Source: Paragordius varius (Eukaryota; Animalia; Nematomorpha). From it: a stretch of 64,000 bases of DNA. The notes beneath the pieces are model-generated. The model searched no databases and was not told the origin of the DNA. It saw only the letters and a list, made by a program, of their open reading frames with translations. The stretch spans positions 5,642,001 through 5,706,000 of the forward strand of contig OZ176051.1 of NCBI GenBank assembly GCA_964247055.1. Direction: 5' to 3'. Positions 13,301 through 62,407 of this stretch are shown here, piece after piece. Made by a program: the position numbers and the translations under genes. Numbering within the stretch: the stretch's first letter is position 1; the number at the start of each line of letters is the position of its first letter.

Positions 13301-15481
13301 ATCATGAAAAAATTGGGGCTTACCTACGGCCTTAATGATGAGGCTATCTCTTCATTACAAAAATATGAACGAGGAAAGTTTGTTGTTTCACCCAAAGTTG
13401 AACAAATTATAGATCCGGCGACACTCAATAACCTATTGGCAAATGTACCATTATCCCTTCAACCATATGTTAAAGGTTTTTTTTTCATTTCATTTGTTTT
13501 GCACACAAAACTATTTTTTTATTTAGTTTGTTGGGCAATCTTTATAGCTTTGTAATTTTTTAAACTTATTTTGTAAGGGTATTTTAAAAGATTATTAGAA
13601 TAGACAAGTGCTGGTATTTTGCTTCAACGCCTTTTTAAAGACGATTTTTTGATAATCTTAATTTTGAAAACCAACTACTGTAAGCTACTTTATTATATTT
13701 AATATAATTAAAATACTCACAAAAAATTGGCTTTTTGTTTAGAAATGGCAGGTTATGGAGATCGCTCGCCTGAAAACTTACAGGGTCCGTTGTGTTCACA
13801 AATTAGCGTTTTAAAGTAATTTTTTTCAGTTTATGTTAATTTATATTTATACAGATGTTATGAAAATTAACAGTCTATTTAAACAAAAACAATATAAATT
13901 TTATCCATATACTACTAATATATAGGCATTTAATTGGTCTTTGACCAAAATTCAGTAATACGGTGTATAAATTAGACGATATGGTTTTATTTTCGTTTAC
14001 TGGATCACCCCATTTATAAATTAATTCGATCATTTTGCAAAAAATAAATTTATGTTAAATTTTGTTTCAATATCATTTAAATTATGTATATGTGGTAAAT
14101 CAATTAGTAAATTTTAATTTATTGTTATAATAATTTGTTTCTTGATAGTCAACGTAATAACGGTATATTTTCATCACTTCAACCATCATCGGGTATTGAA
14201 ATGCCGTCCACATCTTTCTCTACACTGAATTTTACCAGCAATAATAATAGTATAAATACTAGCTACAATAATTCAAACAGTTTTTCAGCCCTGTTAAATG
14301 ACACAGTTTTTTCCAATACAAATGTTCAATCTCATAATGATGGCAAAAATAGCACAAATTATATTCATCACGTTAAAACGGAGTTTATTGATAATAACAA
14401 TATAAATACAGCAAATACAACGGAGTTAAATTATCAAAATTTGACGTTTAACAACAATATAAATGTTGCACCTAAAAATGTCAGTTTTCCTAATGCACAA
14501 TCAAATCATTCAAATAGTTTGCCTAATTCCACAATAAATAATGCAAAATCTTTGCCTCCCACATCTTTAGCCACTTTGCAATTCAATAATTTGTTGTCAC
14601 AGAGAGCATTGCAAATACAAAAGTAATTATTTCTCCGTAAAATATTTATCATTAAACAAATGAAATAATAAAATTAAAACAATTTATCCATTGAAAAAGA
14701 AGATAACATGTATCGAAAATTGTAGTTATAGTTTAATTTATTATTTACAAGCAGATTTTAAAATCTCGTTAACAAGATTAAAAGTAATTACTTTTTAAAG
14801 TGTTTTATGTTTTAATTGGATTCTGCCTAAAGCTTTGATTACAGTCGGAGTTTTAGTAGTTTAAAAACGTCTGACCGTTTAATGCACTTATTACAATAAT
14901 GCACTAAAGTGAAATCAAATAAAAAACAAATTAGCCTCTAAGATGCTAAAATTTAAATTATACAAGGTTTACATTTTCGAATATCTTTCATTATTAATAG
15001 ACTTTTTACTATGTTTGATCATTTGTTCATATATTTGACTAGTTTTTTGAAAAACGGTCACAAAGTTTATTAATGCACTTTACCCATACAGGCCAAACCT
15101 TTATTGTTATATTCATTGACAACTAAGAGGTGATTCGCATAATTAAAAAATAAAAATTTATTTTATAATGTTAACTCTTTTGGAAAGAATTAGCTTTTTA
15201 TATCGCATTTATATTCAAAAACAATTAGATTTAATTCCTTTTGCATTGTGATGTTTAGAAAAGTTCGAGTTGAATTACTTCACAATAGCACCAATAAGCC
15301 AGAAAATCAAAATTTTAGCGATAAAGAAAATATCCAACATAATTATAGAAAAAATATTGATAATGTTGTCAGTGGTATTTGTGCAAATCGTGATCGTATA
15401 TCATCGACATCAACTTCCGATATTTTTTCTTCTGAAGATTCTATGCAAAGCAGCAATTCACAATCGACAAATTCTTATTAA
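10396..15481 (+). CDS. TFDP1: Transcription factor DP (E2F dimerisation partner), ~801 aa, 9 exons
   Basis: Exons 10396-10688, 10717-11345, 11966-12129, 12321-12389, 12723-12973, 13246-13475, 13743-13815, 14149-14622, 15259-15481 (2406 nt, phases consistent). Motifs [82 protein letters not shown] and LQPYVKEMA. The last two exons are less certain. Confidence 0.92.
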
Positions 15482-31052: not shown

Positions 31053-33519
31053 CTATTCTATTTGTTTCTTGCTGGAACAATATTGACGTAATTTCAGTGT
31101 TAAATCATATAAGGGTATTCGATATTGTTTCACAAAATTTCCATAAGATATCATTTTTACAGTTTTTATAGTTTCTTGGGCTGAGCCCTTGTATAAAATT
31201 TTGACAAAGTAATTAAAATGTGAATCGGCCCAAAGTTCAAAAATTATTAGGCTAGCATAATCAGGTTTATGACTAAACTCGATATTAAGGTATGTTAGCA
31301 GAGCGTATATGGTAATATCGTGACCCATATAAAAATTGAGTAATACAGAATCATACGTATTACTCATATTAACTTTGAAATTTTTACATTCAAATTTCTT
31401 GGAAATAGAATTCGGGCATAAAGAAAATAATTTAAAATTGTTTGCAAAGTCCTGTGTAGTATTGGGCGCTAGAGATTTGAACAAACCTATTTTACGTTCC
31501 ATATCCCGTATTATATGGTTTACAAATAGTCCAACGGCCAATCTTTGTACTTCCTTATCATATTTCAATGCATTGATACCAATTAAATCAGCATACTGCT
31601 TAATTAGAGATATTATACGGGGAACACCGACTTTGGTGTTATTCATTTCAATACCGATCGATTTTTCCCCATTAAACCAAAATCCTTGAGTCCATTCAGG
31701 CAAAAAAGTAGAGTTTTCTGCGTCATCACAAGCCAATGGATCTTCCACACGCGTACCCTCTTTTGCCATATCGGCAAAACTGATTCCCGTATGCTCGGAA
31801 ACGTATTGCATAAACTTGGGGTGAGCCTTATAAAAGCGCAAGGAGCTAGAATTAGGGTTCGTTATGGACATCATAATACGTTGTTTGATAGGTTCACATT
31901 GATAATAATTGTACACGGTGAATGGTAAATCGATGGAGTGGGATCCTTTTGGATTTGCACTCAAGTACTGGGGATCCGGAATCAACTTTAAATAATTTTT
32001 TGCCCAGGTCGAATTTAAATAACTATTCCCTGTCTCAATTATTTTAAGTAGTTCGGCATTTGTAAGCAATTCTTTGGAACCCTGATGTTTGCTAAAAAAT
32101 CCGTCATAAAAAGCATGACCGCTACTTATAGTTCGACTTCGGTTACTAGACCACATTTGAATTAGCCTGCTTAAAGGATTATTTAGGGTAGAATATGAAT
32201 TATTATTTTTGCAATTTACATTGTAAATAGCGGATTCTATCATCTTGGTCCATGGTAAAAAAGGATAACACTGATTGTCAGATTCGATGTATTTTTCACA
32301 ATAATTACCGAAGTACCGTTGGAACATTTCTTTGCCTAATTCAAACATTTGTGAAACTCCCTTAGTTGTGAGGTGAGAAAACCCGAAAGGATAGCGTTCT
32401 GGACGCAAAACATATCTAGGGTAAAGGTAATGTTCGTTGGGAGCTCTAGCTCCATGCCTTGCTAAACCATAAACAGCTATGAGAGATTCATCCACAAATC
32501 GAGAATCTGTGCAAATTATATTGTGGAAATTTAATTTATGAAATCATTTAATTTAAAAAGCTTTTTCTATTTCATGGTAATTTTAAACTTAGGCACCCTT
32601 TTTGTTTTTTCATGCGGGGCTTGGGGCTTAGGAATATTTAATATCCATATATCCACTGTTGTTAAAAGGTCCAATTTTATTAATTATAGATTCCAAATTT
32701 ACAAATATATATAATGTACTGTAAATTCCGTCATATAACAAAACTAAAATTAAATTTAAATCTGAATAAAATAAAAGAATATCTTTAAACAATATGTAAA
32801 GCCCCTTTGTAATAATCGCAGATGTCAGCATTCTTCAATAGGGTTTATTATTGGGTATTGGCAATAATGGATTTTGTATATACAGTGAACCGACCCTACG
32901 ATGACCCTTCTTATAATAATAAATCTCTTAAAACAGTCAGCGCTTATACAATATTTAACTCATGAACATGTATTTATCGAATTCGCGGGATTAGTTATAT
33001 CGCTTACTTTGTGGGGGTTTCGGGACTCATTATGCAGAAACCAAAACAAAAATAAAATTTGACTGTTTTTTAAAATTTTATTAATAGTATATGAAGTTTA
33101 TATATCTTTAGAAGAATGAATATAATTAATAATTAATTTTACAATCATAATTTTAATGCACCAAAAAAGGGTTATGCTACGCATATTAAGCGATGTATTT
33201 TTTCGAATAATTGGGTTATTATGAGGGTAGACCATTATCCAAATGTAATTAAAATCTACATATAAATTTAAGCCGAATTTAACTTATAATTCCAAGCTGA
33301 AAACCCATAAAAAACCTTTTAATAAATGAAAAAACAAGCTATAAGAAATATAATAACAATTTATATTTGTAAAAGAATATCAGTATTTTCACCTGAACAT
33401 GGTTGAGCAGACCCAGATATGTTTGAGAGACTTGGATTGATTTCACCATCGATATGTGTAAAGAGTAGTTGAAAAATTATGATTAAATAAGAATTTAATA
33501 AATATTTTTGTTTACACAT
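31053..33519 (-). CDS. Secreted histidine acid phosphatase (branch 2; prostatic/lysosomal acid phosphatase-like), ~526 aa, 2 exons
   Basis: Exon 1, 33519-33393, encodes a signal peptide (MCKQKYLLNSYLIIIFQLLFTHIDG...) and ends at a phase-1 GT. Exon 2, 32506-31053, starts at a phase-1 CAG. Catalytic motifs RHGARAP, SSNRSRT and GHD are present, plus PDYASLIIFELW. No C-terminal TM segment. Confidence 0.9.
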
Positions 33520-35173: not shown

Positions 35174-38100
35174 ATGAAAATATATTCAGCTAATCATTAC
35201 AATGTTTTTGACGAAGAATTTTACCTTGAACCAAAACCGGATTATGATTCCATTAACCGAATGGGTAAACGTCAAATGATACCACACGGTAAACAAGGTT
35301 TTGATAGCACCCAAGAAGATTTAAGCAAAAACTTTTCTTTTATACACCGATCGCGGCAAAAAACTCATTTAAATACTACTTCTACTTTAGTTGATACAAA
35401 TGTTAGTTATGAACCATATCCTTCAAATGCTTTTCTTATAGATAGTAAGAACGATAATAATCGCCTAATGTTAAAAGATGCAGATAGGAAACCGGACAAA
35501 GCTGATAAAAATGACACAGCGCTTGTTAAACGGTCCTTTGGACAATTGAATAATCTCAAATCTTTCAGTAACTTTGCATATGATGGAAATGGTGAAAATA
35601 GCTTCCATCCCGATTTTACATTCCATAAAAATAATGGGATGAACGGGGTATTCAAAACCGATAATAAGCAAAATAATATGAATAAAAGAAAAGGGGCGAT
35701 ATTTAATGACGGATCAAAATTCCTCCACCTAACGAAAAAACAAATAGTAACTATTGCGGTTTTATGGCTACATTTAAGTTTAATCTGTCTGATTTGTAGA
35801 TTTGGTCTTGTAATGTTGGGTGGAACGTATTTCCCCTACCTTACTAATAACTCAAAAAATATAAAAAGTTTTACCAATGAAACCCAACTTCAAACAGATG
35901 CAATCAAAAGTAAAACACACATGAGCAATGCATATATCAGAGCCGGTCCTTTAGGTTTTTGTACAAGCGGTTTATCTAATGAACATGCAACTTACCTCAA
36001 GCTAATCAATTATCTCAATCACGGGGATAATATAGAGAATGTAATACATTGCGTTGATTATTTTAATTCTAAATCGGTTGCACGTATCAACAGGGACCAT
36101 GCTAAAATACCTGAAATTAAATTAAAATTGGGCGAAAATCAATTGATACCCTACGATGAAAGGGTCCAGATTTTATACTCTTATCGAAAATTTCAATCAA
36201 ATATATTTGATCTGGATAGAGCTACCTACAACACGTATAATAATAACAAAAACTTGGATAAAAGGACCTTTATGACCTGGTTAAAACAGTATATGATTTT
36301 GTGGACACAGAAAACCATAAATAGCATGATGGCCAATTCGACGCCAAAAAACATCCTGCTTGTTTATAACATGACCCATTTCATAATAACTCAACTTCCC
36401 ATGTATACCATAATGATTCAAACAGTTTTAATAATTTGTTTAATCATTTTTCTCTTATTATATTGTTTTTCGAAAAAATTCCCATGTTCTCATCAAGCAC
36501 ATATTCAACCGTTGAAAACGTTGAATGAAAATGGCCATAAAAAATTTACAAAGTATCATAAATCAGAAATGAAAGTAGTTATACTGTTTCTCAAATTATA
36601 TGCTGCGCTTTACATAACAATAGGTATAAATATTTTTACCATTATTTTTGTTTACAAAGTTATAATGATTCTTTTGACACAAATAAGTGTTAATTTGGTT
36701 TTTGGCTATATTAAAATTGACTTTTAATAAATGAAATAGATAATTATACATAAGTACTATTAGTTAATAATTTTTATCAATCTAATCCAAAAATGGCTAC
36801 TACGATATTTATGTTTCGACGGACTATAGTCCGGTTTATTTTGTTAAGTCATTTGCCGCACCTAGTGGTCGAAATTGGCAGAAATGGATAATTTTTAAGA
36901 ATCCTTTTTAATGAAAGTTGCAAACTTAATTTATTCTAAGCACATTAAAATTAAATTCACTAGTCTAAACCTAAAGGTATGATGAAAAAATTGCGCTGTT
37001 ATGAGATTTGTACCCTTATATGCAATCCCGCATATTTACGAGTCTTGTGGTTTAATCACCATACCATCACGCTTTTAGAAAGGGATACATTTATGATTTA
37101 ATTTATATTGCTCGTTTTTAAATATTTTTATAGGTATTTAGAAATGGCTAGATATAATGTTTGAAATAGTGTTTAGATATACTAGGCCATTAGTATTATA
37201 AGATAATTGAGACCCTTTTTAAAATACGGCACGGCACAGATGTAAGAACCGACAAAAATTTCTAATTATAATTTTAAAGACTTGTTAGATTGTTTTAGTT
37301 TAAGTAATGATCATAAGGATTTAGCATTCAAAATAACACGGTATTTGCGCCTGTCGTTTAATGACAGTTTATTGATTTCTTTAAATGGATTGATTTGATA
37401 AAATTTATGTTTTATGGTATGAACAGGAATAGCGAATTTAATATCAATTGTCCTATACCCGTTACGTTTAATGGAACCCGACATACGTATTGTATGTAAT
37501 CGACAACTTAAACCATTTACACCAAACACCTATTTATCGTGTAAACTTGTGCAAGGTTATTATTTTACGATTCTGTTAACATTGATGGAATTGACTTTGG
37601 GAACTTGTCTTGCAGTTTTATCCAATAAAGTTCCAAAAACGATTGAAGCAACAAAGTTTCGGTTAGAAACCAAGTATAAAGGTAAAATATTGACAATATA
37701 TAAAAAATATTTGCAAGTTTAAATTACCCATAATTGGTATGTTTAGTTAATTATATTTAAAAATTTGCTCAATAATTTGCGGTGCAAAATAATTCTTATA
37801 TTAGATAATGATTGAATTTTACAGGACTTTAAAGTCACTTGATGTCAAAGTGATAATTGTATTTTACAAGCGCAAAGAAGCACGATTTATTTTGTTTAAA
37901 TAATTTTATTCTTAAACACCCTAGCGTTTAAAACTGTAGCTATGAAATACAGGATGTTTTTTAGCATATAGGAATCATCTGATGCTCTAAAAAACATTTA
38001 TCACACGATCATAATATATTCGTTTTCAGATGTTATCACCCCATTATGTTTTTGGGTTGTTTTATATCCCAGAACGATTTGAAATTTTAATATCTTAAAA

Positions 38101-39637
38101 ATTTAAGGTATTAAGCCGAATTTAAAAATATGCTTTCTTTGGCCCTTTAGGCGTAGACAAAAAATCTTTTAAAAAATGTAAAATTGTAACGAAAATCATT
38201 AAACTTTTTTGCCGCCATTTTTTTCTGAATCGCTAATCCAGCTGCTAAATAAATGTCTATTATGGTTGTTAAATCTAAATAATTTACTTTTAAACTTTTA
38301 ACCTACATTTACCAGCAAAAACTTAATATTTTGATTTTTATCAGCCGTTTTGGAGCCAATTTTAGACTCTACAAGTCACAAAACTGTAAAAAATAGGATT
38401 TATACATGAAAACAATGTTTGATAATTAAATTTTAACTAAAATATCTTTCAAAACTGAGTTTATTACAAAATCAAGCTCTGGGAAATAATACTACCCCAA
38501 AAAGAAAAAGTGAAAAGGTGTTAATATAAATCAACACACATTAAAATACAGCCTTTATTTGGTTAAATATTTATTATCAGCTGTGTCAAGTTATGGAAGG
38601 CTTTTATAATAAAAAAAGGCATACACAAGTGATGAAAATTAATATTCGCTTTTACAATATGGTATTACCAATTTCAAAAGCAAATTTGATTATTTTACTT
38701 TTTAGCATCTAAATCTATAATAAAAATACTTTCACATCGTTTTCTTGGGTTTAACAATTTAAAATATGGCAACTTAAAATATAATTTACATGAAGCATTC
38801 AAAGCAGTTATACTCGTACACTACCTCGCAATAAGAACTCTATCTATAGCATCTTCAGTTCAAGTTTAGTTTTACCATATTTTTATACTCATCCACCGCT
38901 TTAAGGGCACCGTTTTCCCCTTTCCCGCCAAATATGTTCAACAATCTTTTTATTGATATGGTTACCATTTCTTCTTTCTATTTATTCAAGCCATTACCTA
39001 AGCAATGTTAAAATATTAATTGATTATTAGTAAACTTTTAAACCAAAGGCACTATGAAATGATGAGATAAAATTTTGGAAAGATTTTTTTACAATGTGCT
39101 CAATAAACATTTGGTTCTTTTTCCTTTTATATATGTTTTTGTTTAAAAACACATACCATTTACTCTTGTTTAGTCTGTAAACTGTTACATCATTATAATT
39201 AGTTAATTCTATAATTCATAATTTATTTAAAGCTTTTTTCTCATTAATTTAATTAGTAAATAAAAAATTATAATCTAGGTAGTAGTTCCCTAAGATGGGC
39301 TGCCACCAACAATAATGGCATGTCTACCTTCGAAAAATCATCGCACACTCACGATATGGCGTCTACCCTGCAATGTACTAATCGTTTTGATATAGAGTTT
39401 CGACCTTCACTGGGACTAAATGAGGCGTATGTGGTCTCGCCATATCATAGTCGAACACAAACTGTCAGGAATAATCATAATTTTGCCATGGAAAACAGTA
39501 TAACAGAGAATTCTATATATTCCTATTTACCAGCATCCTTTAAAAATATCAATAATAATAATAATACTAATGTTCAGCATCGCCATGTCAATTCTTTTCC
39601 TAAACACGATGATTCAAATTCCGGTGAACATATTTAA
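35174..39637 (+). CDS. Divergent LHFPL/TMHS-family tetraspan membrane protein, ~687 aa, 3 exons
   Basis: Exons 35174-36623, 37427-37681, 39279-39637 (2064 nt; both introns phase 1). Four hydrophobic segments: IAVLWLHLSLICLICRFGLVML; TIMIQTVLIICLIIFLLLYCF; LKLYAALYITIGIANLISIVLYP; YYFTILLTLMELTLGTCLAVLS. Loop 1 carries GPLGFC...C. Loop 2 reads YP..........C...........C...GYY, like the LHFPL pattern YPxGW..C..C..xWAY. An upstream exon cannot be excluded because a TAG acceptor lies 3 nt before the ATG. Confidence 0.65.
38052..38524 (+). mobile_element. MITE-like family, copy D
   Basis: TTTTGGGTTGTTTTATATCCCAG ... AATATGCTTTCTTTGGCCCTTTAGGCG ... ACTACCCCAAAA, ending AAGGTGTTAA at 38524. Confidence 0.6.
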
Positions 39638-41613
39638 TTGCTATGCCTGCAAAGAATGGCATGTAAATTTAAAAAAAACAACGTTGGAAACCTATAAAGA
39701 TACATACATATTTTAATTATTAAATAAGTTTCCTGATTATTTATTATATATAAATATTAATAAACGTCTTTGGGGATAGATATTCAATCGACATTTTGAT
39801 ATAAATGGTTTCTAAATAACACATGATAAAAATAAATAGCTAAGATAGGGCTGAAACCGTTACCATAGGTCGTAAAACTATTTTTCAAGTGATATTAGTA
39901 AATATTTATTTTTTGACTGATAGTTGCGAAGTAAATTTTATAATATGTTCACCAATAGTTTTCAATAGTGTTACCGGTACATCGAGGTTCAGGCCTCTTA
40001 ATATGTTGTGCCGCACAGAATCGCGACTTACTAAATTAACGTGAGTTTGTTAATTTTTTTATTGACAAATTTTGGCTTTATGGCAGCACGGTGTGGATTA
40101 TCATTCTTTGTAAGAGACTATAAATATTTATAAATTGTTTTGATAATTTATGTAAATACTACCAATCAATTAAAGCTTGTTGGAAATTATGGTTGATTTG
40201 GAATTGGATAATGTGGAAATTCAGTGTTTCCAGGGTATGACCTAAAAAAATCTAGATTTAAAGTAATCTCTTGCTGTCCTTCCGAACATCAATGAATGAT
40301 GCGACAACGATAACCGTTTAGAGTTGTTACGGATTTGGATTGACTTTGGGCAATATTTAATTTTATACCCTTCTAAAATAGGATGTTTTCTAGTAAAAGT
40401 AAAAATGCCGATATTCCTTAAATTTTAAATATATGCTAAATTTTGACATGAAGCTTTTTTCCAAGAAAAAGCAAAAAATAAAAAAACATTGGGATTAAAA
40501 TTAGTGCCCCTTCAAAATCCACGCCTTCCTGACGTTTCTGATGCCAAATTGTTATTTAAAATTTTACCATTGTAAAACAGGTAGGGCCCTTAAAATTAAA
40601 TATTATCATTCAAATTTTTATTTATTTTTTTTGAACGAAAACATGGAATACGATATTATTTGTAGCCATTTTAAAAAAATGACACAATTATCTAGTATAG
40701 AACACATTAAATTTGGGTATTTCTTTCAAATAATCAATATAGTATAAAAGTTATTTTAGAGTTTGGAGACTTTTTAATATTAAACTGATAAATCTCCCAA
40801 ATTCAATTAAAGATTTTTATAAACATTACTGAATTGTAAATAACACGGAAAGATTTTTTCTTGGAGACTATTTACTGAAGATGCCAAAACAATTTATAAT
40901 ATGAATTATAGTCATACCAAAATTATAAAAACACACATACATGCAAATAAAAAACAAAATTTATTGTATTGATCAAATGCCTCCATAAAACTATGTGTTA
41001 AATGCGTATAAGTAAATAAATCTAATAAATTACAAATGATAAAACGTGATATAGATAATAGGTGAGAAAATATATTTGTGGATAAATTGTGAATAATACG
41101 ATGATAAATACAACCATGTGTGAAAGGTAAAATTATTAAAAATAAACAGGCATATCCGGAAAATATGGCAGAAACGATGCATTTTGATAATAAATGCTTT
41201 GGTTCTCTTTGAATTCACTTCTAACATCAAAACTATTATTTTTGTGAAAATAGTTTTGGTCTAATGCTTTATTTGTTTGTGGACTGACAAACGTTGAAAG
41301 TGATTGGCCATTCTGGCTGCCAGCAAACTCTAAAGGATTCAGTGCAGAATTGGAAAGAAATGGGTTCAAACTATTGTTAGGTATGTTGACATATAATGGC
41401 TGCTGATGCTAAGATGTAAAAAAATATGACAGATTTATTTTAAAAAAAATTGTCATAACTTAATAAAAAAAGTATTATGTTGGAACAACTCATAAAAAAT
41501 ATTTAGATATCAAGTTTTAAAAATATTTATCATAAAGCCTCCTAAATACCGAATAGTTTATGATTGCTCGATGATTCCAGTTAATAAACACATATCAATT
41601 TACTTTTTCGTGT

Positions 41614-44600
41614 TTAGTGTAGGGGATATATTTTAACACGCGGAATCATGGAATGAAATTTACAGCAATGATGAATTTGAATGGTTTTGCTTTGATTATT
41701 TTTATGTAATGTATGACAACCCGGATACGTTTCATTTTCGATTTTAACCCGTTTCTCAGACCTTTTAATACTACTCCCTCCTTTGTTAGTTGAATGTTGT
41801 CGATTTAAAGACGGAATTTTTGAAAATATAGATTGGCCTACAAAGTTACTATAAATGTGGGTATCATCTTCACAATCCTTTTTCATATTGCTATAACCAA
41901 AATATTAATTGTACTACCGACAAAACCGAAAATATTTTAAAACACAAATGAAACAACATCTCATACGCACGGACTACAAATGTGTACAAAAGCTTAATAT
42001 TATACAGAAAAGTGAGCTATTATAGGCCATTTAGGTATTACGAATGGCTAAAATGGAAAATTTACATCTATGTTTTCATGTATGAGATTTTCCATTTTAT
42101 TAGGTACATATTTAATGGATATTGTATTTTCACTCCACAAAAATGAAACAAATAAAAATGAAAATTCTCATACATGGCAGACGTGTAAATTAACTCCCCT
42201 TTTATAAATAGCTTTTGATACTCTATATATCAAATATCGTTAACATGCAAAACTACGAACAATAACGAAACAATAGCAATTATATTTCATACCTAACGAT
42301 ATTGGGTGATGTAACATATGTTACGGAGATGGGCTAAATATAATACGTATATCCTTTAAATAAATTTTTACGTAAAATATCTTACATATATATTACATTT
42401 AATATTAAATACCTCTCTTAGGTTTTCAGGCTTGGTTTCTTTCGTTACAATATCACCAACGTCTAAAATGTTTTTAGGTGTTGGGTGTGAGGGCCGTGGC
42501 CTCATAACTATATTATTATTTTCATCAATGTCAAGAAGTAAATCTTTTGCATGAGATGTAATAATGTGTCCATTTTGCTGTTTTTTAGTCTTTGTTTCAT
42601 TACTGTCCTGGTAACAAAAATCGGTATAAATTTCATGTTGAGATAATGGGAGAGAAGAGGTGGCCAGAATTTCTTTTGTTGATTTGGAATAGGATAAATA
42701 TGACATTGTTGATGAGATATTTTGATTTTGATGAGTACATGTTTGAGATTTATTATTGTCACATCCCTCTCCACTTTGTTGATACTCGATAGCTTTGGTT
42801 TCAGACACAACATAGGGTTTAAATGGTCGTGGAATGATACCCGTTTCCTTGTATATACCAACCACCAAATTTTGACCGCTAATATCTGACGAAGGAGAAT
42901 CTAATTGAGTTACCATATAACCGTTTGAATAGAAACTATTTGGTGAAAGTATAACACCTGTGGATAATTGATTGTTTTTTGCCAAACCAATTTCTTGACG
43001 GTGTAGATTCAAATAATTTATCGTGTTTGGTGTTAAGTTATTGGGTGTAGGTATAATATTTACCTTGTCGTGTTTGATGCCGCCATTGCTATGTAAATAT
43101 CTACCATCATCAGCTATGTAACCATTAATTCCATTCAAATTTTTTGTATACGGATCGTTGTTAGAATAACCATGAGTAGTATGTATATCAACATAATTAG
43201 TAGCTGAAGCCATTGTATAAACAGCAGGATTGGTCCCTAAACCGTTGGTATACGCTGAAGGTAGCGTATTTAAAGAAACACTATGGGTATTGTTGGCATA
43301 ATTGAATGGGGATCGAACATTTAGTACTCCGGCGGAATTCAATGAGGAATTAAGAGATCGTCTTCTTCTAATAGTGTTGAAATATTTGTCACGTATTCGA
43401 TTTCTACTGTGGCACCAATTGCTATAATTTTATTAGCACATGGGAAATTAGTGAATATGGAATTGTACATTATTTGTAGCAAATTACAAGCTATGTTAAG
43501 TTTAATCAGAGATTTAAAAAAAATCGTATGGTTTGATATTATAATTAAAACTATATTTTTTCAAGGTGATATGATTTTTATATAGCGATTTAAAATGCGC
43601 GGTATTTATATAAATATATACGCACCACTAACTACCTCTATATAAAATACCAATTTTTAAAAAATCGTTGTTGTGCCTCCTTTTTGATATAATTAATAAA
43701 ATATGCATATTATTATCTCTTATTTTAAATGTGAAAGCTTTTTAGACTGGATCATTTTTTTGTCGCTAAAAATGCAACATAACTCTTATTTTTTGGATGT
43801 TTAAAAATGTTAGTATACGTTAATAATTTTATTTTTCACAAAAATTATTTTTAAACATAATGTGACATATTAAACATTAAAATTAATGTCATCATAAAAA
43901 TTCATTAAAAAATAGTTGTTTAGATAAAAATATATAAAATGAATTCAAAGTTTTAATATCTCAACTACTCAATATTAAAAGCTGGAACAATAGTCATTGT
44001 TGATTTATTTTTGAAATAAAAACTAAAATCTTATACATTTTTTAATTAACATCGAGAAGAACTTCTTATATATCCTTTTTTCTAACCACTTTAAGCTGTG
44101 AATTTTGATCACAAGTTATGTTTTTGGATGAATGAGATTGCGTCAAAACGGTTTTTTTCTGACCTAAACTGTAAACCGTTTTTATTTTGTCCTTCTCAAA
44201 CTTTGGGCTAATGTTCCATATGTAATTCCAGGAATATAGCCATTTTTGATCGGGATTCGATTTTCTAAATGAGGGGCACATATAATTTTTGTTTATAAAA
44301 TATCCTCAACTTTGATTAGTCGAATGATTGGGTTAATTGCATTTTAGGCGGGATGTGGTTATTAGTAAGTTAGTATGCTACAACTCTTTTGGTAAATTTA
44401 AACTGGAAACTGTGTCGTCTTTCTAGCATTGAAGCGCAGTTATGTTTTTTGAGTGATATAGTAAGTAGGATTAGATATTTGTTAGTTATAGCGGTTATTA
44501 GTAATACATTTCAAATAAGCAAAAATATAATAAAATAAAGTGTATATTACTTTTTGGCAATGAGAATGGCGAGCACAAAAATAAAAACTAAGGAAAATCC

Positions 44601-47600
44601 CAGCAGGGCACCCAAAACGATCAAATAATTTTCACGTTTGAACCAGAATGGTGTTATTTTTGTTATGGTAGCTGTTTGACCAGGTATTGTCGCATTACTA
44701 GATAACTAAAAAACATACAACATGCATAAGGCATAAACCATAAAAATAAATGGTCACATTTAGAAAACTGGCTAATATAGATAATATGATTGCTTTTACT
44801 TAAGTAGTCAGTATGTAAGGTTAAATTTAAAAATAATTATGTTATAAAATCGAGAATAGTTTTATGGGTTAGTTAATGAAACAGTAATCTACTGCTAAAT
44901 GCCACCAAATTTTTTCTATTTTGATTTGGCATTTAAACTAGTATACTTTTTAGGCCAATAATAAACTTTATTAAAGCTTAGTTTCATAAAATCCAAAACA
45001 AAACCCAAAAATTTAATACAAGCTGCAAGATAATAATCAATACTGTTATGGGTAACGCAATGAAACTATATCAAAAGCTTTATATAAATATTTTAACTAA
45101 AATTATTTTGAAGCTTACATTTATTATAACTTGGGCCGTAGCGGTTCGAGGCATTTTGCCAGAATCCGTGGCAATCACGGTTAGTTCATAGGTATTTAGC
45201 GGCAGTTGATTGGGTTCATACATAAATATGGCTCCATGTTTATTTATGCTAAAATATCTAAAAATACATCAATTATGTATGTCTCTATTTTCTTTTTTCT
45301 CATATGTATAAGGACTTTAATTGTAATAAGGCTTCTTTAAAGCTTTAACACTCGTCTGCCTAGGGCGACTGTAATGATGGAAAAATTGTACAGTTTCAGG
45401 TTTTATACCCTGTGAGGAAATTGTTAAATTTGTGGGTTTTTTACAAAAAAATCTGTTCCAAAAATATCTTTTTAAAGAGTACCATATTATTAAAATAATA
45501 GATTATCTTTATGACCATTTAAAATAAATGCGAAAAACTTACTTTGAACCCGTTAGCTTAAGACTTATATTATCGTTGTCTTTATCACTGACCTATTAAT
45601 GATAAGAAGGATTATATCTTCTAGTCAATCAAACTTAAAATGCTATAAAAAAATATTTAGAACATTTATAACTTCTATTTGGCCAACAAACGTTCCATCT
45701 ACACGATCGGCTGTAAAGATATAGGAATCAGAATTGAATATTGGAGCGTTGTCATTCACATTCAAGACATGGATAATTATGTACATTACGTCAGTCTAAA
45801 AATAGGATGCATATATATTTTATCATTTAATCCTTTACGGGGGGATTTAGATCGGAATTAGCTTTTTCGGTATCATTTTAGAAACAAAAAGATATGCGAA
45901 AACGGTTACAAAGCCATTTAAACCAAAACGATGGTTTCAGACAGTTTCGTAAAAAAATTTATATATAATAGTATATTGCACAGTGTTAGATGGTAAATGT
46001 TATCCACTTTTTCAAATCAAGGCAGAGTTTTTTAAAATTAGTATTCTTATAAATTAATATTTTAGGCATTTTTTAACATTGTATCGAAATAATATTATGG
46101 ATATAGATAAAATGAGACTTTGGAAAAAAAGCTTATTACAATATTCCAAAACTTTTTCCTGGTTTTTAAATATATTTCATATATAAAGTATAATTAAATT
46201 AATAAGTGCTTTTACTTTATTTGCGTTTGTATATGAAACATCTGATTGCAAATGGTAGGCTGGTATATATTCATAATCCAAAAAATCAGTTAGAATAAGG
46301 TCACCCCTATAATACCGAAAAATACATGAAATAATAAGGTCCCCTATGATTATAAATGCACAATCCATACCTCAATAAGAAAAAATTAAATATCAATTAT
46401 GATTCAATTAATCAACGTGTAAACCAATTATCACGCAAATTTTTATTATAACAGTTTTTGAATAAGGCATTTTAACAAATTCAAGAAACCGATAACCCTA
46501 AAATTTGATATAAACCTCGTGGTTAGATTAAACGGTATATAGGGTGGTGTATCAGGATTCGTTTTCTGTAAATTCGAAGCGTCCCTGATCGTGACATTGG
46601 TATATTTTAAGTTGGCAAACGTCAGAGGATAAAATGAGCTTAGACGTGACCCCAAATTCGCTATAAGCATTCCGGGTAAACTATCTTCATTGACTTTTAA
46701 CTCAACTGGATATGCCGGGCCCAATTCCAATGGCGCAATAATGTTTTCGAATGATTTAGAGCTTGATTTGGCATATAAAGGCCGCCGAATTTTAAGCGTT
46801 GTGGTTGAATAACGATCCAGATTATCTGATTGAGTTGCCTTAACGGATAAGTCATAAAAAATGTTTTTTGGAATATTCATAGGTTATTTAGTTTTTTTTC
46901 TTTAAGTTAATTAATTTTTAAAAGGTCATTAAATAGTCTACTCACTTTGACAACAATCATGAAATCTTGATCTTGGGGTGGCAAATTATTAAGATAAATT
47001 TTTCCGGTCGCAGGATGTATTATGAAGTAGCCATCGTCTAAAAATATATAATTAGGAATTAATTAAAAATAGAGCATATAATATAAAAAGTGTTGTCTGT
47101 TGAGAAATTATTAGCAACGAGCTATATTAATTCATTTATAACATTAGATTTTAATATTTAAACCTGTAGTTATATTGTCGACCGAATTTTCAAAATTATA
47201 GAATATATCGGCTTTAAGTCCTTCATCTTGATCGTAGGCCGCGATATTATCGGGTTCGATTTTTAATTCATTTTTCTGTGAAAAAAAAACAATTTTAAAG
47301 ATAGATTGAGGTTTATAAATGTTAAATCCTAATATAATATATTTTAAAACGAATCGAGATATACCAATGTATAATTTTCAGGGATAATAGCCCAATAGTT
47401 GGAATGAAAAAAAACCGGGTTTTTATCATCACCGTCTAGTACTGTAATTCGGATAAGTGTTGAATTCTTAAGACTTGGTTCACCGGTGTCCTAAGAAAAT
47501 TTATTAATTGATAAAAATAAGTTAATTGGTATTTAGAATTAAATGTTAATTCTGTTTTTAGCAAATATATTAACCTGAGCAATGAGATTGGCATATACGG

Positions 47601-50600
47601 TATGAATTGTCTCATAATCCAATGCTTTATTTAATATCACAATGGGTACACTGGGGTCAGGTATGGAAAAATATTCCTACATATGCCAAATAAATAAATC
47701 ACAAATCATAAAATTTGAATGGTTTTTATTAAAAATAACTCAAATTGATGGATAAATATTGAATAGTTATGGCAATAAAGTCCGTTTTTAAGAATTTATA
47801 TCTCCGCAAATTAAATGGATATACCATTCATTTACTAAAAAATGACTTTAAATCAGTGATACTCAAACCGCGGCCCGCGGGCCGCATGCGGCCCTTAGAG
47901 TCCTTTGAAATTGCCCTATGACCATATTGACACTAAAACTATTTTTTTTATTGATGGATTTTTAAAATACACATAATCGGATTTTCGTTTATTTCAATAT
48001 TAATTTATTTTATTTAGATTTAATGGTAATTTTTATTTTTACCCAATTTGAAATGTGGAAATATTTCCCTATATTAAGATGTTTTCAAAATTTTGGCACG
48101 CGTTGTTTTTGTTTTTGCATTCTATTTTCTTTCTTATTTTTAAATTATTGCATTCCTTTTTGTATTTAAGCAAGTCTTTCACCCAAACTTGCATATACAT
48201 ATTCTTTTCATTGCTATCCTGCATCATTTTTTAAAACACACTTCCATAAAATATTTTTCAAATCAACATCATCTAATTTCGACCTATTTTTTATAGCATA
48301 ATACAAATTATATTTCTTATTTTGAAAAAAATAATATTTTAACATAAATTCAAGGGATGACATCTCATGCTGAAAAACGTAAATTATCCGATGAAAATCA
48401 CTCCTTTAAAAAAAAATGGGAGAATACTTTGTCGTTCCAAATAAAAATGGTGTTACCAGCCAGGACAACCTAATTATAAAAATACAACATTGAAACACAT
48501 ATTACAATCCATTCTCAATTACCAAAAAATTATGAGGAAAAAAACGAAAAATATAAAAGGATTAAGGAACTATACCAGAAAGAAAAATCTATTATGTCCA
48601 TAGCTTTCGCCTAGGAAAAAGGTGTAACATTAGCTTCTTATAAAATTTGCTATATTTTAGGAAATACATGAAACCGTTTACTGATTCCCAACTAATAAAA
48701 GAATGTCTAATAAATGGTTGCACTTTTTTGATATCCATAATAAAGATCAAATCACGAGGCAAATTAAAAAACTTCAACTTTCTGATTCAACATGTGCTCG
48801 ACGCATTGAAAATATGTCTAATTATATTTTTAACAATACATTATTGGTGAAAAACTGCAACAAATATTTTAGTATTGCTATTGATTCTGGCACTGATATT
48901 TTTTCGACTAAATGTGCGCTCTTTGTGAGATTTTGCAACGACATAATCAACGAGGATTATTTAAAATTTTAACCAATGAATAATACCACGAAAGAAAGTG
49001 ATTTTGTCGAAATAATTAGCCTTTTTTCGATAATAATGGTATATCTATGAAAAAATTGGTTTCGATCTGCACAGATGACTGTCCCTCTATGATTGGAATA
49101 ACTAAAAATTTATTCCACTTTTGATAAACAATAATTTGCAAAATATATTATCCTTTCACTGCTTTATTCATCAGAAAAACTTGGTTCCAGGTATACAAGA
49201 TGAATCACTCAATTTAATTAAAACGGTTGTGTTAACCACATTCGTATAGAATTCAACCGCCGTAAATTCAACCTTCTGAAAGAATCCACAGTGAGTTTAA
49301 TGATATTCTTTTGTACACCGTTGTGAGATGGTTAAGCCTTAGCAAAGTATTAAATAGAATTTTTGTATGAAAACACGAAATTCTCTTATTTATAAAAGAT
49401 AACAGAAGTTTGACAGGGAGATTAATAGTGACAAATGGTGGGTTTTATTAGCCTACCTTTGCAACATTACTTATAAACAGAGTATTTTTAAAGCATAATC
49501 AGATATTTGCCTTTGAAGAAAAATTAATAATATATAAACAAGATTTTACAAATTAAACCCTATATTTTCCAAAACTTATAACAATTCAGGAAGAAATGGA
49601 ATTTACTGCTTAATTTAATAACAGACAATCATTTAACATTGTTATCTAATGAGATGAAATTTAGATTTCAAGAAATAAGAAATATTGCTTAAAACTCGTT
49701 ATCCATGGCATATGGATATATCTATTATCAAGCAACTTGAGCATTTCGGTTTTGATCAGGCGCATATCATTGAAGAATTCATAAATTTTAATGAATGATT
49801 CCAACTATATTCAAGGCGTAGAGAAAAAATATATGTAGAGTTTTGGCAATATGTGCCAAATAAATATGAAAATAGAAAAAAATGTGTTCAAGTTATAATA
49901 ACTCTTTTTCCCTTAACTTACACGTGTGAGATGTCATATCCAAAAATAAAATATGTCAAGAATACACACAAACCGCTTAACCAATAATCATATGGACGAC
50001 GTATTAAGACTGGCCTGTCATGAAATGAAACCAAATCTGTCAAAAAATATTGGTTAATATCGAAATAAAAATTGTTATCAAAATATTTTAATTTTTTAAA
50101 CCAAATGGTAAACCAGTTTTTAGCTGGATTTACATGCGATCCGCAAAAAATTTGCTGATTTGAGTATAAATATGTGCATGTATGTCAAATAGCTCTGTAT
50201 TTTCCATTATAAGGTTCATGGCCCTCGAGAAAAAAATGTATTTTATTTGGCCCGTCAAATTTTTTTGGTGAGTACCACTGCTTTAAATTATGAAATAAAA
50301 TGTATTTATTAAATGATGTTCTATAATTTTTGTTTGTTATTTAATCATCGTCCAAAATCGCAAACTTACACAGAGAAGAAAAATATTAGATGAAACTAGA
50401 AATTATAATAGTATTTATATTGTCTTTATTAAATACAAATATTTATTGTAATTTTTTTAGAAAGATATAATAAATCAATGAATAAAAGACCATTTTAAGG
50501 ATATTATACCGAATATGGGCCATCTTCTATGGTAAAATAAAGTTGAGAATTGAAGGCATCAAAATCTTTATCATGAGCTTGGATGTTTTGAAAGATGGTT

Positions 50601-52147
50601 GTTCCTACCGGTGTTAACTGTTTATTATGATATAAGTAATATTTAGAAAAAATGATGGTATACATTTCTAAGAAATAATAATTTGCAAGACATTTAATTT
50701 TGTCAAAAAAGCCTCAAAAAACTTTTGCATATACCTATAAATGCGTTATTACGCAAATATTTCACCCATATTTATAATAATAAAAATTTAGATATAGTTC
50801 TTTTGAAAAATATTATTGCTAAATATTAGATTTACAAATTATTGTAGTTCTTGTAAAAATAATATTAAAAATATTTACTTCAGTAAGACTAATGTCATAC
50901 ATATCACGTTCAAAGTATGGAGCATTATCGTTGACATCTATGATATTGAGCGATAAATCTTGTGAGATCTAACAATTTATTATGTATTAGAAAATAATAT
51001 AGCTGTTTAGATAAATAAACAGTGTATGGATTAAGTCTGACGACCGGTTAAAAATAAATGCCATGACCGTAACTGTGATCGTTTTTAAAACTGTAGAGTT
51101 TATAAATCATTTATATATCAAGTGGTAAATGTTATTAAAAATTTATTATTAATATGATAAAAAATGCACACAACATAATAAGCAATTAAAAAACGTCAAT
51201 ACCAAGCCAGACAATTATTTTTTGATCTAAGACCCTAGTTTTATAATAATAAATATTATACCATGATATTGGTGATGGAATCAATACAACGTAAAAATGG
51301 TTTATCCGTTATTCGATCAATCTATTGTGTATAAAATACAAAAAATATAGTTTACAGGTTTTTTATATAACTCCAAAAACTATTTTTGAAAATATGTCTG
51401 TAAATTCCTATTTTTAATATGTAATTATTCTGAAGGATAAAAACTGATTGAGAAAATGTAAAAATATACGTTCTTATGACGTTTATTAAAATTTTAACTA
51501 AATCTGAATTCAATACAGAACCTAAAAAATTCATATGATATTTAAAAAATATAATTTAAATATACAATATATATATTATATATAACCTCGGCATCCAAAC
51601 TTTTAAGTAAAACGAAATTGATAGCGTTGTTTGCGACATACAGCTCTATGTATGGATTCGTGTCCAAAGTTATGTTTAAATGCGTTTCGTTCAAAAATTG
51701 ACTCCCTATGCTAAAGAGTGACTTAACAACGGTGCCTAAAATTATAGAGTTTTAATTTGAAATATTTCGAAATTACTAATTATATCTTACCCAATAATAT
51801 ATTAAGTTATAGTTTTTATAATTTTTAGCTGATTTTTGAAACCAAAAATTAATATTATTATTTTTATAAATAAATTAGCAAAGAGAATTATTCATCATTA
51901 ACATGTATTTAATTTAGAGTTTTGTATATATAAAAAGGATTAAAAATTAATAAAGAAAACTTAATTGAAGGTGCAACATAATATAGATTAAAAAAATAAG
52001 CCTGTTTTTGTCTCAAAAACAAATACCAACCATATTAAAAAATAATGCTTCAGCGTGCATTATGTATAGAACAAGTTTTACCTTTGGGAAGATTTTCAGG
52101 GATGTCTATAATACGATCGATAGTGGGAATGTCGCAAGACGTGTAAC
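41614..52147 (-). CDS. PCDH15/Cad99C-related cadherin: 5 EC repeats, one TM, long cytoplasmic tail (signal-peptide exon and 3' end unresolved)
   Basis: Exons 52147-52082, 51705-51587, 51321-51262, 50968-50879, 50617-50510, 47676-47575, 47490-47365, 47275-47164, 47037-46946, 46838-46516, 46306-46216, 45795-45673, 45592-45543, 45257-45119, 44705-44551, 43406-42413, all phase-consistent. Probable further exons 42333-42293 and 41890-41614; possibly also ~41412-41136. Motifs DVNDNAPYF, ELTPVGTTIF, LDYE, DGDDKNPVF, AYDQDEG, ATQSDNLDRY, NVNDNAPIF and ATDSG. TM YLIVLGALLGFSLVFIFVLAILIA is followed by a basic stop-transfer segment KNRNRIRDK..RRRR. Confidence 0.88.
47854..50280 (+). mobile_element. Defective hAT (Buster/SPIN/GTF2IRD2-like) transposon inside a cadherin intron
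   Basis: TIRs CAGTGATACTCA and TGAGTACCACTG. Perfect TSD CTTTAAAT at 47846-47853 and 50281-50288. Frameshifted transposase pieces KRKLSDEN, YMKPFTDSQLIKECL and LQLSDSTCARRIENMS..YFSIAIDSGTD. Confidence 0.95.
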
Positions 52148-60217: not shown

Positions 60218-62407
60218 TTAAAAGACAGCTAATAGAGCAAATATGCCATATAACAAAGCACAAGGGTATATAATAAGTATTTGTTGATTATCCATTTTTA
60301 AGGCATCCACAAACATACGTGATGCTGATATTGCACACCACATTATGGCTGAAAATACGAAGATTGTCCCAGTGAAACCACTATATTATATAAAATATGT
60401 ATATAAATTTCTAAATTTAATTATGAGTAAAAATAATAAAATATTTTTATTGATAAGTAGATGGGGTTTCAAGCAATTTAAACAATTTAAAATTTAGGGT
60501 TTTATATTTAGAAACCTAAAAGCACCATGACATAAACTACAAAGTGCAAATCTTGAGACCCAAAATAAATTTGAATTTATGGGACGCTAGTAATATTGAT
60601 AGCGTTATTATCGGTTAAAATAGTCAAATATTTAATTTAATAAAATTTTCATGAGTTAATATGGTATAATTTTAAAATTATTTGAGTTTTGCAATATTCC
60701 AACATTAATTAAAATATGCCGGTATTGTATCAGCTTATAACAAAAGAATGCACTTTGGGTAATTAATGTATATTTGTGTTTAAAAGATATGAGCGAGCTT
60801 TTTTTGATTAGCAGCTGTTATATATTTTCAAAATACAGAAAACATCCAATATAAAGAGCAATATTTTAACCCATATTAATATAATTCCAGCAACAGATTT
60901 GTAATTAAAACGATTAAATTGCAACATGTTAAATTATTTAAAATCAATGTAAAGTAAAATTATTTTATTTTAAAATTTGGAATTTCTCTTGAAAAATATA
61001 ATTATGATAATAAAACCTCGTATAAATATCCTAATAAAATACACATTTAATAAATAATTATTGTTACAATGTTTTTGCGTTAAATCATTTTTTTATTTAA
61101 TCGAAACTGATTTAAAGCTGTATTTGGGAAAAGCAAATATTTTTTTTAATAAAGTTTAAAAGTAAATTACTCACATGGTTTTAAAAACTCGCAAACAGTG
61201 ATTAATTGATAAATTTATATATTATGGAGTAAAAGATTTTTTGGAAAACTAATCAGGGGTTGAATAAAAACGGCTGGCCGTATTTTCGGATTAAAGTCGC
61301 ATTTAAATATATGGACATTATAATATTTTATTAAATTTTATCCCTAAAACTGTAAAATTACTATTTAATACAACAAGTTAAGCTAGCTCTTTGCTAAAAT
61401 TCGGGAAGATTTATTCGATAAATTTGTTTATGAATTCATTGAGATTTGATAAAGTTTTGTATTAAAAATTTCTAGCGGGCTGCAAAGATATTTCAGGAAT
61501 CGAATGTGGTCAGCGTGTTGGAGAGGCGTGTTTTAATTATATCTAGCTTAATTCGGTTTAGATTACTTTAAATAATATTTTATGAAATTGTAAAATTATA
61601 GATTGTTTCTCCATATTATCTAACATATAGCCTAATTTTAACTAATTATATAATTTTTAAAATATTTGAATCAGGTTTATAAATTTTTTTGATAAACCTT
61701 AAAGTTAGGAAGGTGGATAAAATTGATAGTATAATAATGGGTAATAAACTATAGCCCAATACGCTCATTATACATGTGAAGGAAACGGAAAGTTGACTCA
61801 TGAGATTCAAAAGACAATATATGCCAACACATCCTAAACCGCTGATACCGTAAATGTAGCCAAAATGAACTTTTCCGGACTAAAATTTAGGGACATAAAG
61901 TACCATGAGAAGGCTAAATCCAAAAAGCAAACAAAAAAAGAGTGGACCAGTAAGATCGTTTTCCGTATACATTTGATTGTTGTTCTTTTTAAATGGGTTG
62001 AGCACTGAAAGCGTCTAAATATATGATTATATATAAACTCTTACCTTTGATTTAATATTAGTAAAATTTACACCCAATTCTATTACATTTTAGAATAAAT
62101 TATAACCTTCTAATAATGGAATCGAATCGTCATCATCCGTTGAGGTATTGGTATTTGTTGATGATGGGTTAAAAATTTGTCCTTGATAATCATAATGTGA
62201 ATTATTATTTTGGGCATTTGGTGATGTGTAATCAAAAGATTGAAATTGCCTATTTATATGTAAAAAATATTAAAATCCAATTATAATAAATTACAAATAA
62301 ATATATTAATACATATCATAATTAGCTGGATTATAAATTGTCGTTGGAAACGGAACAGAATTCGTTGATTGATTCATAGGATACCAAAAATCCTTATTTT
62401 CTGTCAT
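60218..62407 (-). CDS. YIPF5: Yip1 domain family member 5 (ER-Golgi trafficking), 242 aa, 6 exons
   Basis: Exons 62407-62313, 62249-62107, 62079-62045, 62014-61904, 61879-61698, 60380-60218 (729 nt). Motifs [48 protein letters not shown] and C-terminal [22 protein letters not shown]. Confidence 0.95.

Follow-up and report, generated by a model that had tools for sequence, protein, structure and literature searches.

The LHFPL family (PF10242) includes LHFPL1-6, among them LHFPL5/TMHS, and TMEM211. Its members are usually about 200-250 aa long, with four membrane passes, a long first extracellular loop containing a cysteine pair, a third TM helix that ends in YP, and two cysteines in the second loop. 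In humans, the genes for LHFPL5 and PCDH15 are found on different chromosomes. The mouse complex of these two proteins is held together mainly via the TM helix of the cadherin, with 1100 square angstroms buried, and additionally features an EC11-EL collar on the LHFPL5 sheet; a disulfide in extracellular loop 1 (ECL1) of LHFPL5 joins Cys68 and Cys79 (PMC6092121). The PCDH15/Cad99C cadherins have eleven EC repeats (PMC2171266, PMC6092121), an EL/MAD12 domain close to the membrane, which follows the last EC repeat and precedes the TM helix (PMC6092121, PMC7547225), and a C-terminus that forms a class I PDZ-binding site, S/T-X-L/V (PMC2171266). In human PCDH15, the EC2-3 linker is the variant DGDD (p.236DGDDL240; PMC7547225).

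The locus described here was detected in a 64,000-nucleotide stretch of Paragordius varius DNA, referred to here as the window. It contains two neighbouring, convergent membrane-protein genes, a tetraspan on the plus strand and a cadherin on the minus strand. The favoured interpretation, held with somewhat more confidence than doubt, is that these are two independent, intact and fast-evolving genes lying tail to tail, encoding a claudin-superfamily tetraspan and a five-repeat cadherin, and that their adjacency is most likely incidental.

Gene models and topology

The host genome is very AT-rich, and the DNA at the locus is 28% GC. The tetraspan gene starts with an ATG at 35174 and encodes 687 aa in three exons (Table 1); in the modelled splicing, its introns have GT/AG borders and are all phase 1. 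The cadherin gene has at least 19 exons, all with AG/GT borders and consistent phases, and encodes at least 1079 aa. This model is least certain at exon b' and at the acceptor of exon c, and a signal-peptide exon was not found. An extra exon between k' and m was considered and rejected, as the phases fit without one, and further EC repeats upstream of 52147 were likewise rejected, as there are no cadherin motifs on the minus strand of the window in that region. The 2.8-kb intron between exons d and e contains transposon-like open frames on the plus strand.

The original prediction placed an LHFPL-like gene on the plus strand with its end at 39637, and a cadherin on the minus strand with its 3' end at about 41.1-41.6 kb. 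Both placements are borne out, by the TAA of tetraspan exon 3 and by a cadherin stop codon at 41136-41138, and the end of the predicted span, 52147, is the exact start of the first recognisable cadherin exon. The two genes were also said to be convergent with no recognised gene between them, and this agrees with checks of the gap against Pfam and Rfam and for tRNAs: its open frames have no Pfam match, on which basis an extra gene was rejected, and no Rfam family or tRNA was found. The gap presumably houses the 3' UTRs of both genes. The description of both proteins as remodelled was correct.

Four TM-like segments are evident from hydropathy in the tetraspan, at about aa 189-221, 403-439 and 465-483 (continuing into exon 2) and at residues 45-66 of exon 2. 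The large TM1-TM2 loop and smaller TM3-TM4 loop fit the LHFPL pattern. Exon 1 opens with a cytoplasmic tail of ~188-190 aa; the ~185-aa ECL1 has four NxS/T sites and exactly two cysteines, Cys263 and Cys293. TM2 (about aa 403-431) comes next, then an intracellular loop, and the exon ends halfway through TM3. In exon 2, the remainder of TM3 ends in YP and is followed by an extracellular loop 2 (ECL2) with two cysteines and by TM4, after which the C-terminal tail amounts to ~140 aa in total. An AlphaFold2 prediction for the exon 1 part, made without an alignment, has a mean pLDDT of 46. The N-terminal tail (~190 aa), the long first loop, which would be glycosylated, and the C-terminal tail are probably all lineage-specific additions. 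By analogy with the superfamily, the protein most likely acts as an accessory or scaffold subunit at the plasma membrane.

Table 1. Features of the tetraspan-cadherin locus, in window coordinates
Feature	Position	Strand	Description
Tetraspan exon 1	35174-36623	+	483 codons plus 1 base; 517-aa open frame; GT donor at 36624; TM segments from hydropathy
Tetraspan exon 2	37427-37681	+	AG/GT borders, phase 1; Pfam L_HMGIC_fpl match; rest of TM3 to start of C-terminal tail
High-copy interspersed repeat in tetraspan intron 2	37970-38570		Contig depth 100-300x the flanking level in each of the four runs; numerous loose ends and joints
Tetraspan exon 3	39279-39637	+	AG acceptor at 39277-39278, phase consistent; ~119 aa of cytoplasmic tail; TAA at 39635-39637
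Gap between stop codons	39638-41135		1498 bp; one high-copy repeat at about 40370-40569 (contig depth spike)
Cadherin exons o, p, q, r	43421-42413, 42333-42293, 41890-41749, 41408-41136	-	Cytoplasmic tail of ~490 aa ending ...FPDMPVYF
Cadherin exon n	44551-44705	-	27-residue stalk and single TM helix (LIVLGALLGFSLVFIFVLAILIA)
Cadherin exons j, k, k', m	46306-46216, 45795-45673, 45592-45543, 45257-45119	-	End of EC4, canonical linker NVNDNAP, EC5
Cadherin exons g, h, i	47275-47164, 47037-46946, 46838-46516	-	EC3, EC3-4 junction without DxNDN (...LKIRRPLYAK...), most of EC4
Cadherin exons d, e, f	50617-50510, 47676-47575, 47490-47365	-	EC2 (starts LTPVGTTIF) and EC2-3 linker LDGDDKNPVF
Cadherin exons a, b, b', c	52147-52082, 51735-51587, 51429-51372, 50958-50879	-	EC1 and EC1-2 linker DVNDNAP; motifs IPENLPKG, LDAE, DVNDNAPYF

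Family placement of the tetraspan protein

Searches with both proteins were run exon by exon. Tetraspan exon 2 matches the Pfam profile L_HMGIC_fpl (PF10242) over positions 121-181 of 181 with E 5.8e-4 and 20.6 bits, below the cut-off of 25.2 bits; exon 1 and its sub-parts have no Pfam match, and exon 3 has no family match. The label "LHFPL-like" in the original prediction, for which a search with this profile had been suggested, stands in part: the four-pass topology and the exon 2 match favour it, but that match remains under the cut-off and is the only one. For scale, the window also contains a genuine Yip1 exon, which has a comparable score (E 2.6e-4), and plainly spurious matches to TM families in the same Pfam scans reach E 0.008.

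Other sequence searches with the tetraspan exons recovered no LHFPL protein. A HMMER search with exon 1 (483 aa) against 1.84 billion representative proteins detected no relatives at E <= 0.001, neither the 517-aa frame of exon 1 nor its 299-aa TM1-TM3 part returned a match in word-based protein searches, and no relative was found in a metagenome locus scan. Against PDB sequences, neither exon 1 nor exon 2 has a meaningful match, in a set that presumably includes LHFPL5 from the mouse complex (PMC6092121). In the Atlas language-model search, the neighbours of exon 2 belong to the claudin superfamily, with a clarin-2-like cluster first (0.92) and TMEM178A and LHFPL next (0.87), and the clarin, TMEM178 and LHFPL branches are not separated; for exon 1, it gives a weak resemblance to fungal Fig1/SUR7 (0.84). 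Both results favour membership of the claudin superfamily by a method independent of the Pfam scan.

It is possible, if rather unlikely, that the tetraspan is not an LHFPL protein, and that it belongs to another branch of the claudin superfamily (clarin-like or TMEM178-like) or is a lineage-specific invention; the premise of a known partnership would then fail, leaving a pair without partner precedent. The order of the language-model clusters, the fungal resemblance, the 483 aa without a sequence relative and the Pfam score under the gathering threshold are all consistent with this reading, as is the spacing of the ECL1 cysteines, which are 30 residues apart compared to 11 in LHFPL5 (PMC6092121). 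However, LHFPL is the sole claudin-type family reported by hmmscan for exon 2 up to E 10, and although the clarin, TMEM178 and claudin-PMP22 branches are, with LHFPL, the nearest clusters to this exon, none of their Pfam models appears in that range. The match also spans the end of TM3 through TM4, reaches the final position of the profile and comes in the expected order, behind three helices. A further lead, though not a test, is that YP and the first cysteine of ECL2 are 12 residues apart, the same spacing as in human LHFPL5.

The TM3-ECL2-TM4 half of this four-pass, presumably claudin-superfamily protein appears most similar to the LHFPL family, and an LHFPL branch is the likelier placement. 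The features shared with that family are the four passes, the long first loop with two cysteines (at a wider spacing), the YP at the end of TM3, the two cysteines in loop 2 and the C-terminal third with its match under the profile cut-off. In contrast, the tetraspan is ~3x longer, its first loop reaches ~185 aa, both cytoplasmic tails are long, and profile matches are lacking for the N-terminal two thirds of the domain.

The cadherin and its resemblance to PCDH15

The cadherin identity is solid, as judged by a Pfam Cadherin match on exon m (E 8.5e-6), PDB cadherin matches on three exons (1.8e-15, 1.9e-8 and 2.7e-6), and a motif scan giving three linker motifs and four LDxE motifs in register. 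From motifs and length, there are five EC repeats in ~540 ectodomain residues. Exons b, e and i have no PDB match, and exon i also has no Pfam match. Canonical calcium-binding linkers are found at two junctions, EC1-2 and EC4-5, and the EC3-4 junction, which has no calcium motif, is probably a flexible hinge. The cytoplasmic tail is rich in Asn, Ser, Thr and Tyr, matches no Pfam family, Cadherin_C included, and is probably disordered.

The resemblance to PCDH15 is concentrated in EC2. Exon d has PCDH15 EC2 as its best PDB match (E 0.0022, in an alignment that partly extends into intron sequence), and among solved cadherins only the EC2 repeats of PCDH15 and CDH23 match it; a word-based protein search with this exon gave no match. 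The nonapeptide LTPVGTTIF is identical to the start of EC2 in PCDH15 chain 8e51_C, in the same ordinal repeat, and the EC2-3 linker has the DGDD of human PCDH15 (PMC7547225). Other exons score higher against different cadherins: the best PDB match of exon f is CELSR1 (1.8e-15), those in the exon j-m group are Pcdh-gamma and PCDH19, and PCDH15 ranks 11th for exon f, 20th for exon k and 12th for exon m.

"PCDH15-like" is a description that holds for EC2 and not for the overall architecture. Like PCDH15/Cad99C, the protein is single-pass, with a canonical EC1-2 linker and atypical later ones, and the Asn-rich tail is shared with Cad99C (PMC2171266). It differs in having five EC repeats, against 11, and in lacking EL/MAD12: the helix follows EC5 after a mere 27 residues, and no frame for a ~110-aa domain exists in the upstream intron of 413 nt. 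The C-terminus, ...DMPVYF, is not a class I PDZ end, and most exons score higher against other cadherins. Because EC2 carries protocadherin-15-type marks, the cadherin may descend, in shortened form, from the PCDH15/Cad99C lineage, although it does not have the architecture of that family.

At present, the value of the two genes is descriptive. The tetraspan, of which 483 aa lack a detectable relative, is an extreme and orphan-looking candidate for the claudin/LHFPL superfamily, and the cadherin retains PCDH15-type EC2 marks on five repeats. Both are useful markers of the extent to which membrane proteins diverge in an AT-rich lineage.

Adjacency and coding status

The physical linkage proposed in the original prediction is real, as the coordinates and gene models demonstrate. 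The further proposal, an ancient linked module, is unsupported apart from the adjacency, and nothing contradicts it outright. Its premise, an LHFPL5-PCDH15 module, is weak: the LHFPL placement of the tetraspan is putative, and the cadherin is without six of the 11 EC repeats and the EC11-EL collar. In a true module, a remodelled PCDH15/Cad99C orthologue would bind an LHFPL5/TMHS-type partner via the cadherin TM helix, and the genes would share a chromatin or regulatory domain. This is improbable, despite several points that accord with it: the EC2 opening, the restriction of exon d matches to PCDH15 and CDH23, the DGDD linker, an order of linkers (canonical, modified, degenerate, canonical) that resembles PCDH15 EC1-5 (PMC7547225), and LHFPL as the only Pfam family for the tetraspan. 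A cadherin TM helix and a four-helix tetraspan, between which the mouse complex has its main contact (PMC6092121), are also both present; the collar is not. The five repeats, the missing EL and the lack of a class I PDZ end (PMC2171266, PMC6092121) argue against a module, as do the preferences of three of the four exons with PDB cadherin matches for CELSR1, Pcdh-gamma or PCDH19 (with PCDH15 11th to 20th) and the intron sequence in the exon d alignment. The tail-to-tail layout means that there is no shared promoter. Literature searches found no invertebrate LHFPL-PCDH15 synteny. The sequencing runs containing the locus appear to be DNA, because introns and the intergenic gap are covered like exons.

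A related reading, in which the cadherin is a PCDH15/Cad99C descendant reduced in length, the tetraspan is of LHFPL type, and the two have been kept adjacent in this lineage as one membrane complex, is about as improbable. If it were true, the pair would give a first indication that a cadherin TM helix and LHFPL were partners at the tip-link end before vertebrates arose, and that this partnership can persist without the EC11-EL collar. Should the pair prove to be linked in several phyla, or the proteins to bind each other, the PCDH15-LHFPL5 partnership would have originated well before vertebrate hair cells, and linkage or binding would place a small, tractable version of the complex at hand.

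In the favoured interpretation of independent genes, functional coupling would be absent; the two promoters must be separate and lie at the far ends of the pair. With about one gene per 8-10 kb in the window, close neighbours are the rule. If both family labels are right, however, two such genes, named in advance, would seldom end up side by side by chance (on the order of two neighbouring positions x a few LHFPL genes / ~10^4 genes), and "incidental" is thus a prior and not a result.

Two of the runs (X4/X5) represent a diverged haplotype or population. In these, the tetraspan contains no stop codon, a 6-nt deletion is in frame, and the listed changes comprise 13 synonymous and 23 non-synonymous ones, against a random expectation of 20% synonymous. 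Divergence in the TM1-TM3 part is ~3-4% versus ~7-8% in introns. It is very unlikely that one of the genes is a decaying pseudogene or its model wrong: the runs give no RNA evidence, the N-terminal part of exon 1 differs by an intron-like 8.5% between haplotypes, and the signal-peptide exon and exon b' leave the cadherin model incomplete or uncertain, but DNA of 28% GC would hardly ever contain open frames as long as 517 and 353 codons unless they were coding, 22 of 22 exons join in phase via canonical splice sites, there is a synonymous excess, and the sole indel detected in exon 1 preserves the frame. The tetraspan, with its long open frame, synonymous excess and in-frame indel, is live coding sequence.

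The tetraspan gene

The forward-strand gene, which encodes a claudin/LHFPL-type four-pass protein (the tetraspan), has a 517-codon open frame from the ATG at 35174. A model read from the sequence and checked by script joins three exons, with all junctions in phase 1 and a total of 2064 nt (687 amino acids), and the end originally predicted at 39637 is matched by the stop codon. By hydropathy, exon 1 contains three TM-like stretches, the third of which is split by an intron and resumes in exon 2, where a fourth is located. The N-terminal tail of about 188 amino acids is followed by TM1, a loop of about 185 amino acids that carries four NxS/T sites and two cysteines, then TM2, a short intracellular loop, TM3, whose last residues are YP, a second two-cysteine loop, TM4 and a C-terminal tail of about 140 amino acids. 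The comparison of cysteine spacing in the extracellular loops (ECL1 and ECL2) with human LHFPL5 serves as a lead rather than as a test.

The tetraspan gene is live and its N-terminal tail nearly unconstrained, because sequencing runs X4/X5, which represent a diverged haplotype or population, yield contigs that span the gene without any stop codon, 13 of the 36 coding differences listed are synonymous (random change would be expected to give about 20%), and divergence is about 3-4% in the TM1-TM3 part, about 7-8% in the introns and 8.5% in the tail, whose evolutionary rate is about that of the introns. The same haplotype or population carries an in-frame 6-nt deletion at 35623 in exon 1, and over 35174-36623 it differs by 3-8%.

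The only Pfam report for the tetraspan is L_HMGIC_fpl, in exon 2 only (E 5.8e-4), spanning profile positions 121-181 of 181 and, at 20.6 bits, below the cut-off of 25.2 bits; no other claudin-type model was reported up to E 10. On the scale of this window, a convincing Yip1 exon scores E 2.6e-4, and plainly spurious TM-family matches occur up to E 0.008. Exon 1 matched no Pfam family, gave nothing meaningful against PDB chains, and had no match in word-based protein searches or when 1.84 billion representative proteins were searched in full with HMMER. In a language-model search, exon 2 is close to clarin-like (0.92), TMEM178A/LHFPL (0.87) and Claudin_2 clusters, and exon 1 is weakly near fungal Fig1/SUR7 tetraspans (0.84). 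Given these Pfam and language-model results, a claudin-superfamily tetraspan fold is well supported for the predicted protein and LHFPL is the best guess at a single branch, not an established placement, with single exons as queries lowering the sensitivity of this assignment and that of the cadherin alike.

Features of the tetraspan, the cadherin and the surrounding window
Feature	Position	Strand	Remark
Asn-rich open frames	10396-14626	+
Histidine acid phosphatase gene	31053-32495	-	Pfam His_Phos_2, E 5e-14
Tetraspan exon 1	35174-36623	+	GT donor at 36624
Tetraspan exon 2	37427-37681	+	AG/GT border either side
High-copy interspersed repeat	37970-38570		tetraspan intron 2; contig depth
Tetraspan exon 3	39279-39637	+	ends in TAA at 39635-39637
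High-copy interspersed repeat	40370-40569		gap between tetraspan and cadherin; contig depth
Cadherin EC1-2 linker		-	DVNDNAP, canonical
Cadherin EC2-3 linker		-	LDGDDKNP
Cadherin EC3-4 junction	46516-46838	-	LKIRRPLYAK, without DxNDN calcium-binding linker; LKIRRPLYAKSSSKSFEN
Cadherin EC4-5 linker		-	NVNDNAP, canonical
Broken open frames	48445-49250	+	e.g. FSIAIDSGTDIFSTKCALFVRFCND
Yip1-domain gene	60221-62269	-	Pfam Yip1, E 2.6e-4 on one exon

The cadherin and PCDH15

Judged from its predicted product, the cadherin identity of the reverse-strand gene is secure. The 19-exon model begins at 52147, the coordinate originally predicted, and runs to a stop codon at 41136-41138, with AG/GT borders at every exon and phases that close; the product has at least 1079 amino acids. 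Confidence in the model is lowest for the short exon b' and for the acceptor of exon c. No signal-peptide exon was found, and no further cadherin motifs occur upstream within the window. About 8 kb of AT-rich, apparently non-coding DNA separates the cadherin from the Yip1-domain gene upstream, and the missing first exon may lie in this stretch.

The ectodomain of about 540 residues comprises five cadherin repeats (EC1-EC5), followed by a 27-residue stalk, one TM helix and a tail of about 490 amino acids in which Asn, Ser, Thr and Tyr abound and which terminates in PVYF. EC4 exceeds the usual length by about 30 residues. The EC3-EC4 junction probably forms a hinge without calcium, of the kind described for PCDH15.

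PCDH15 and Cad99C have 11 EC repeats, a membrane-adjacent EL/MAD12 domain and a class I PDZ-binding end (PMC2171266, PMC6092121), whereas this cadherin has five repeats and lacks both the domain and the PDZ-binding end, and membership by architecture fails on each point. Local sequence similarity is more favorable. Exon d, which opens EC2, has matches among solved cadherins only in the EC2 repeats of PCDH15 and CDH23, and nine of its residues, LTPVGTTIF, are identical in PCDH15 (E 0.0022), in an alignment that partly extends into intron sequence; the residues that actually precede them in the product (MYDISLTE, from exon c) show the same pattern. In its EC2-3 linker the cadherin has the DGDD variant that is described for human PCDH15 (p.236DGDDL240), and its linkers run from canonical through modified to degenerate, in parallel with PCDH15 EC1-4 (PMC7547225). 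Pointing away from PCDH15, exon f best matches CELSR1 (1.8e-15), with PCDH15 ranking 11th, and exons k and m best match Pcdh-gamma and PCDH19, with PCDH15 ranking 20th and 12th. Descent from the PCDH15/Cad99C lineage is a possibility that falls somewhat short of probable.

Relationship of the two genes

The tetraspan and cadherin genes are convergent, with stop codons 1498 bp apart, and the gap contains no recognizable gene, RNA family or tRNA, only a repeat. Because the genes converge, a shared promoter is impossible, and any coupling would have to involve a shared chromatin domain or overlapping 3' ends. Protein searches and a metagenome locus scan found no relatives of the tetraspan, and the literature searched makes no mention of synteny of this type. 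In the mouse complex, PCDH15 touches LHFPL5 mainly through its TM helix, an interface that buries 1100 square angstroms, and the EC11-EL collar does no more than rest above the LHFPL5 sheet (PMC6092121); in the P. varius pair, a predicted cadherin TM helix is also present, but the collar is absent.

Two unrelated neighbors are the most likely explanation. The original prediction was right about the genes, their coordinates, orientation and remodelling, but its family labels are weak, given the sub-threshold Pfam match of the tetraspan and the failure of the PCDH15 architecture. The interpretation as an ancient linked module is at present unsupported, and we regard it as improbable.

Repeats and neighboring genes

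The two interspersed repeats are present in very high copy number: all four runs show contig depths there of 100-300 times the flanking level and numerous alternative joints. They probably represent a family of small non-autonomous transposons. The 2.8-kb intron that separates cadherin exons d and e contains the broken open frames, which resemble a decayed hAT-type transposase and had no significant match in Pfam.

The window has a GC content of 24-31% throughout and is plainly from an animal genome with spliced genes; a recognizable gene occurs every 8-10 kb or so. The histidine acid phosphatase is a single 480-aa open frame, and therefore without an intron at least there, in an intron-rich surrounding genome. 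Part of the Asn-rich frames is a candidate for the DNA-binding domain of a transcription factor of the DP (E2F dimerisation partner) type.
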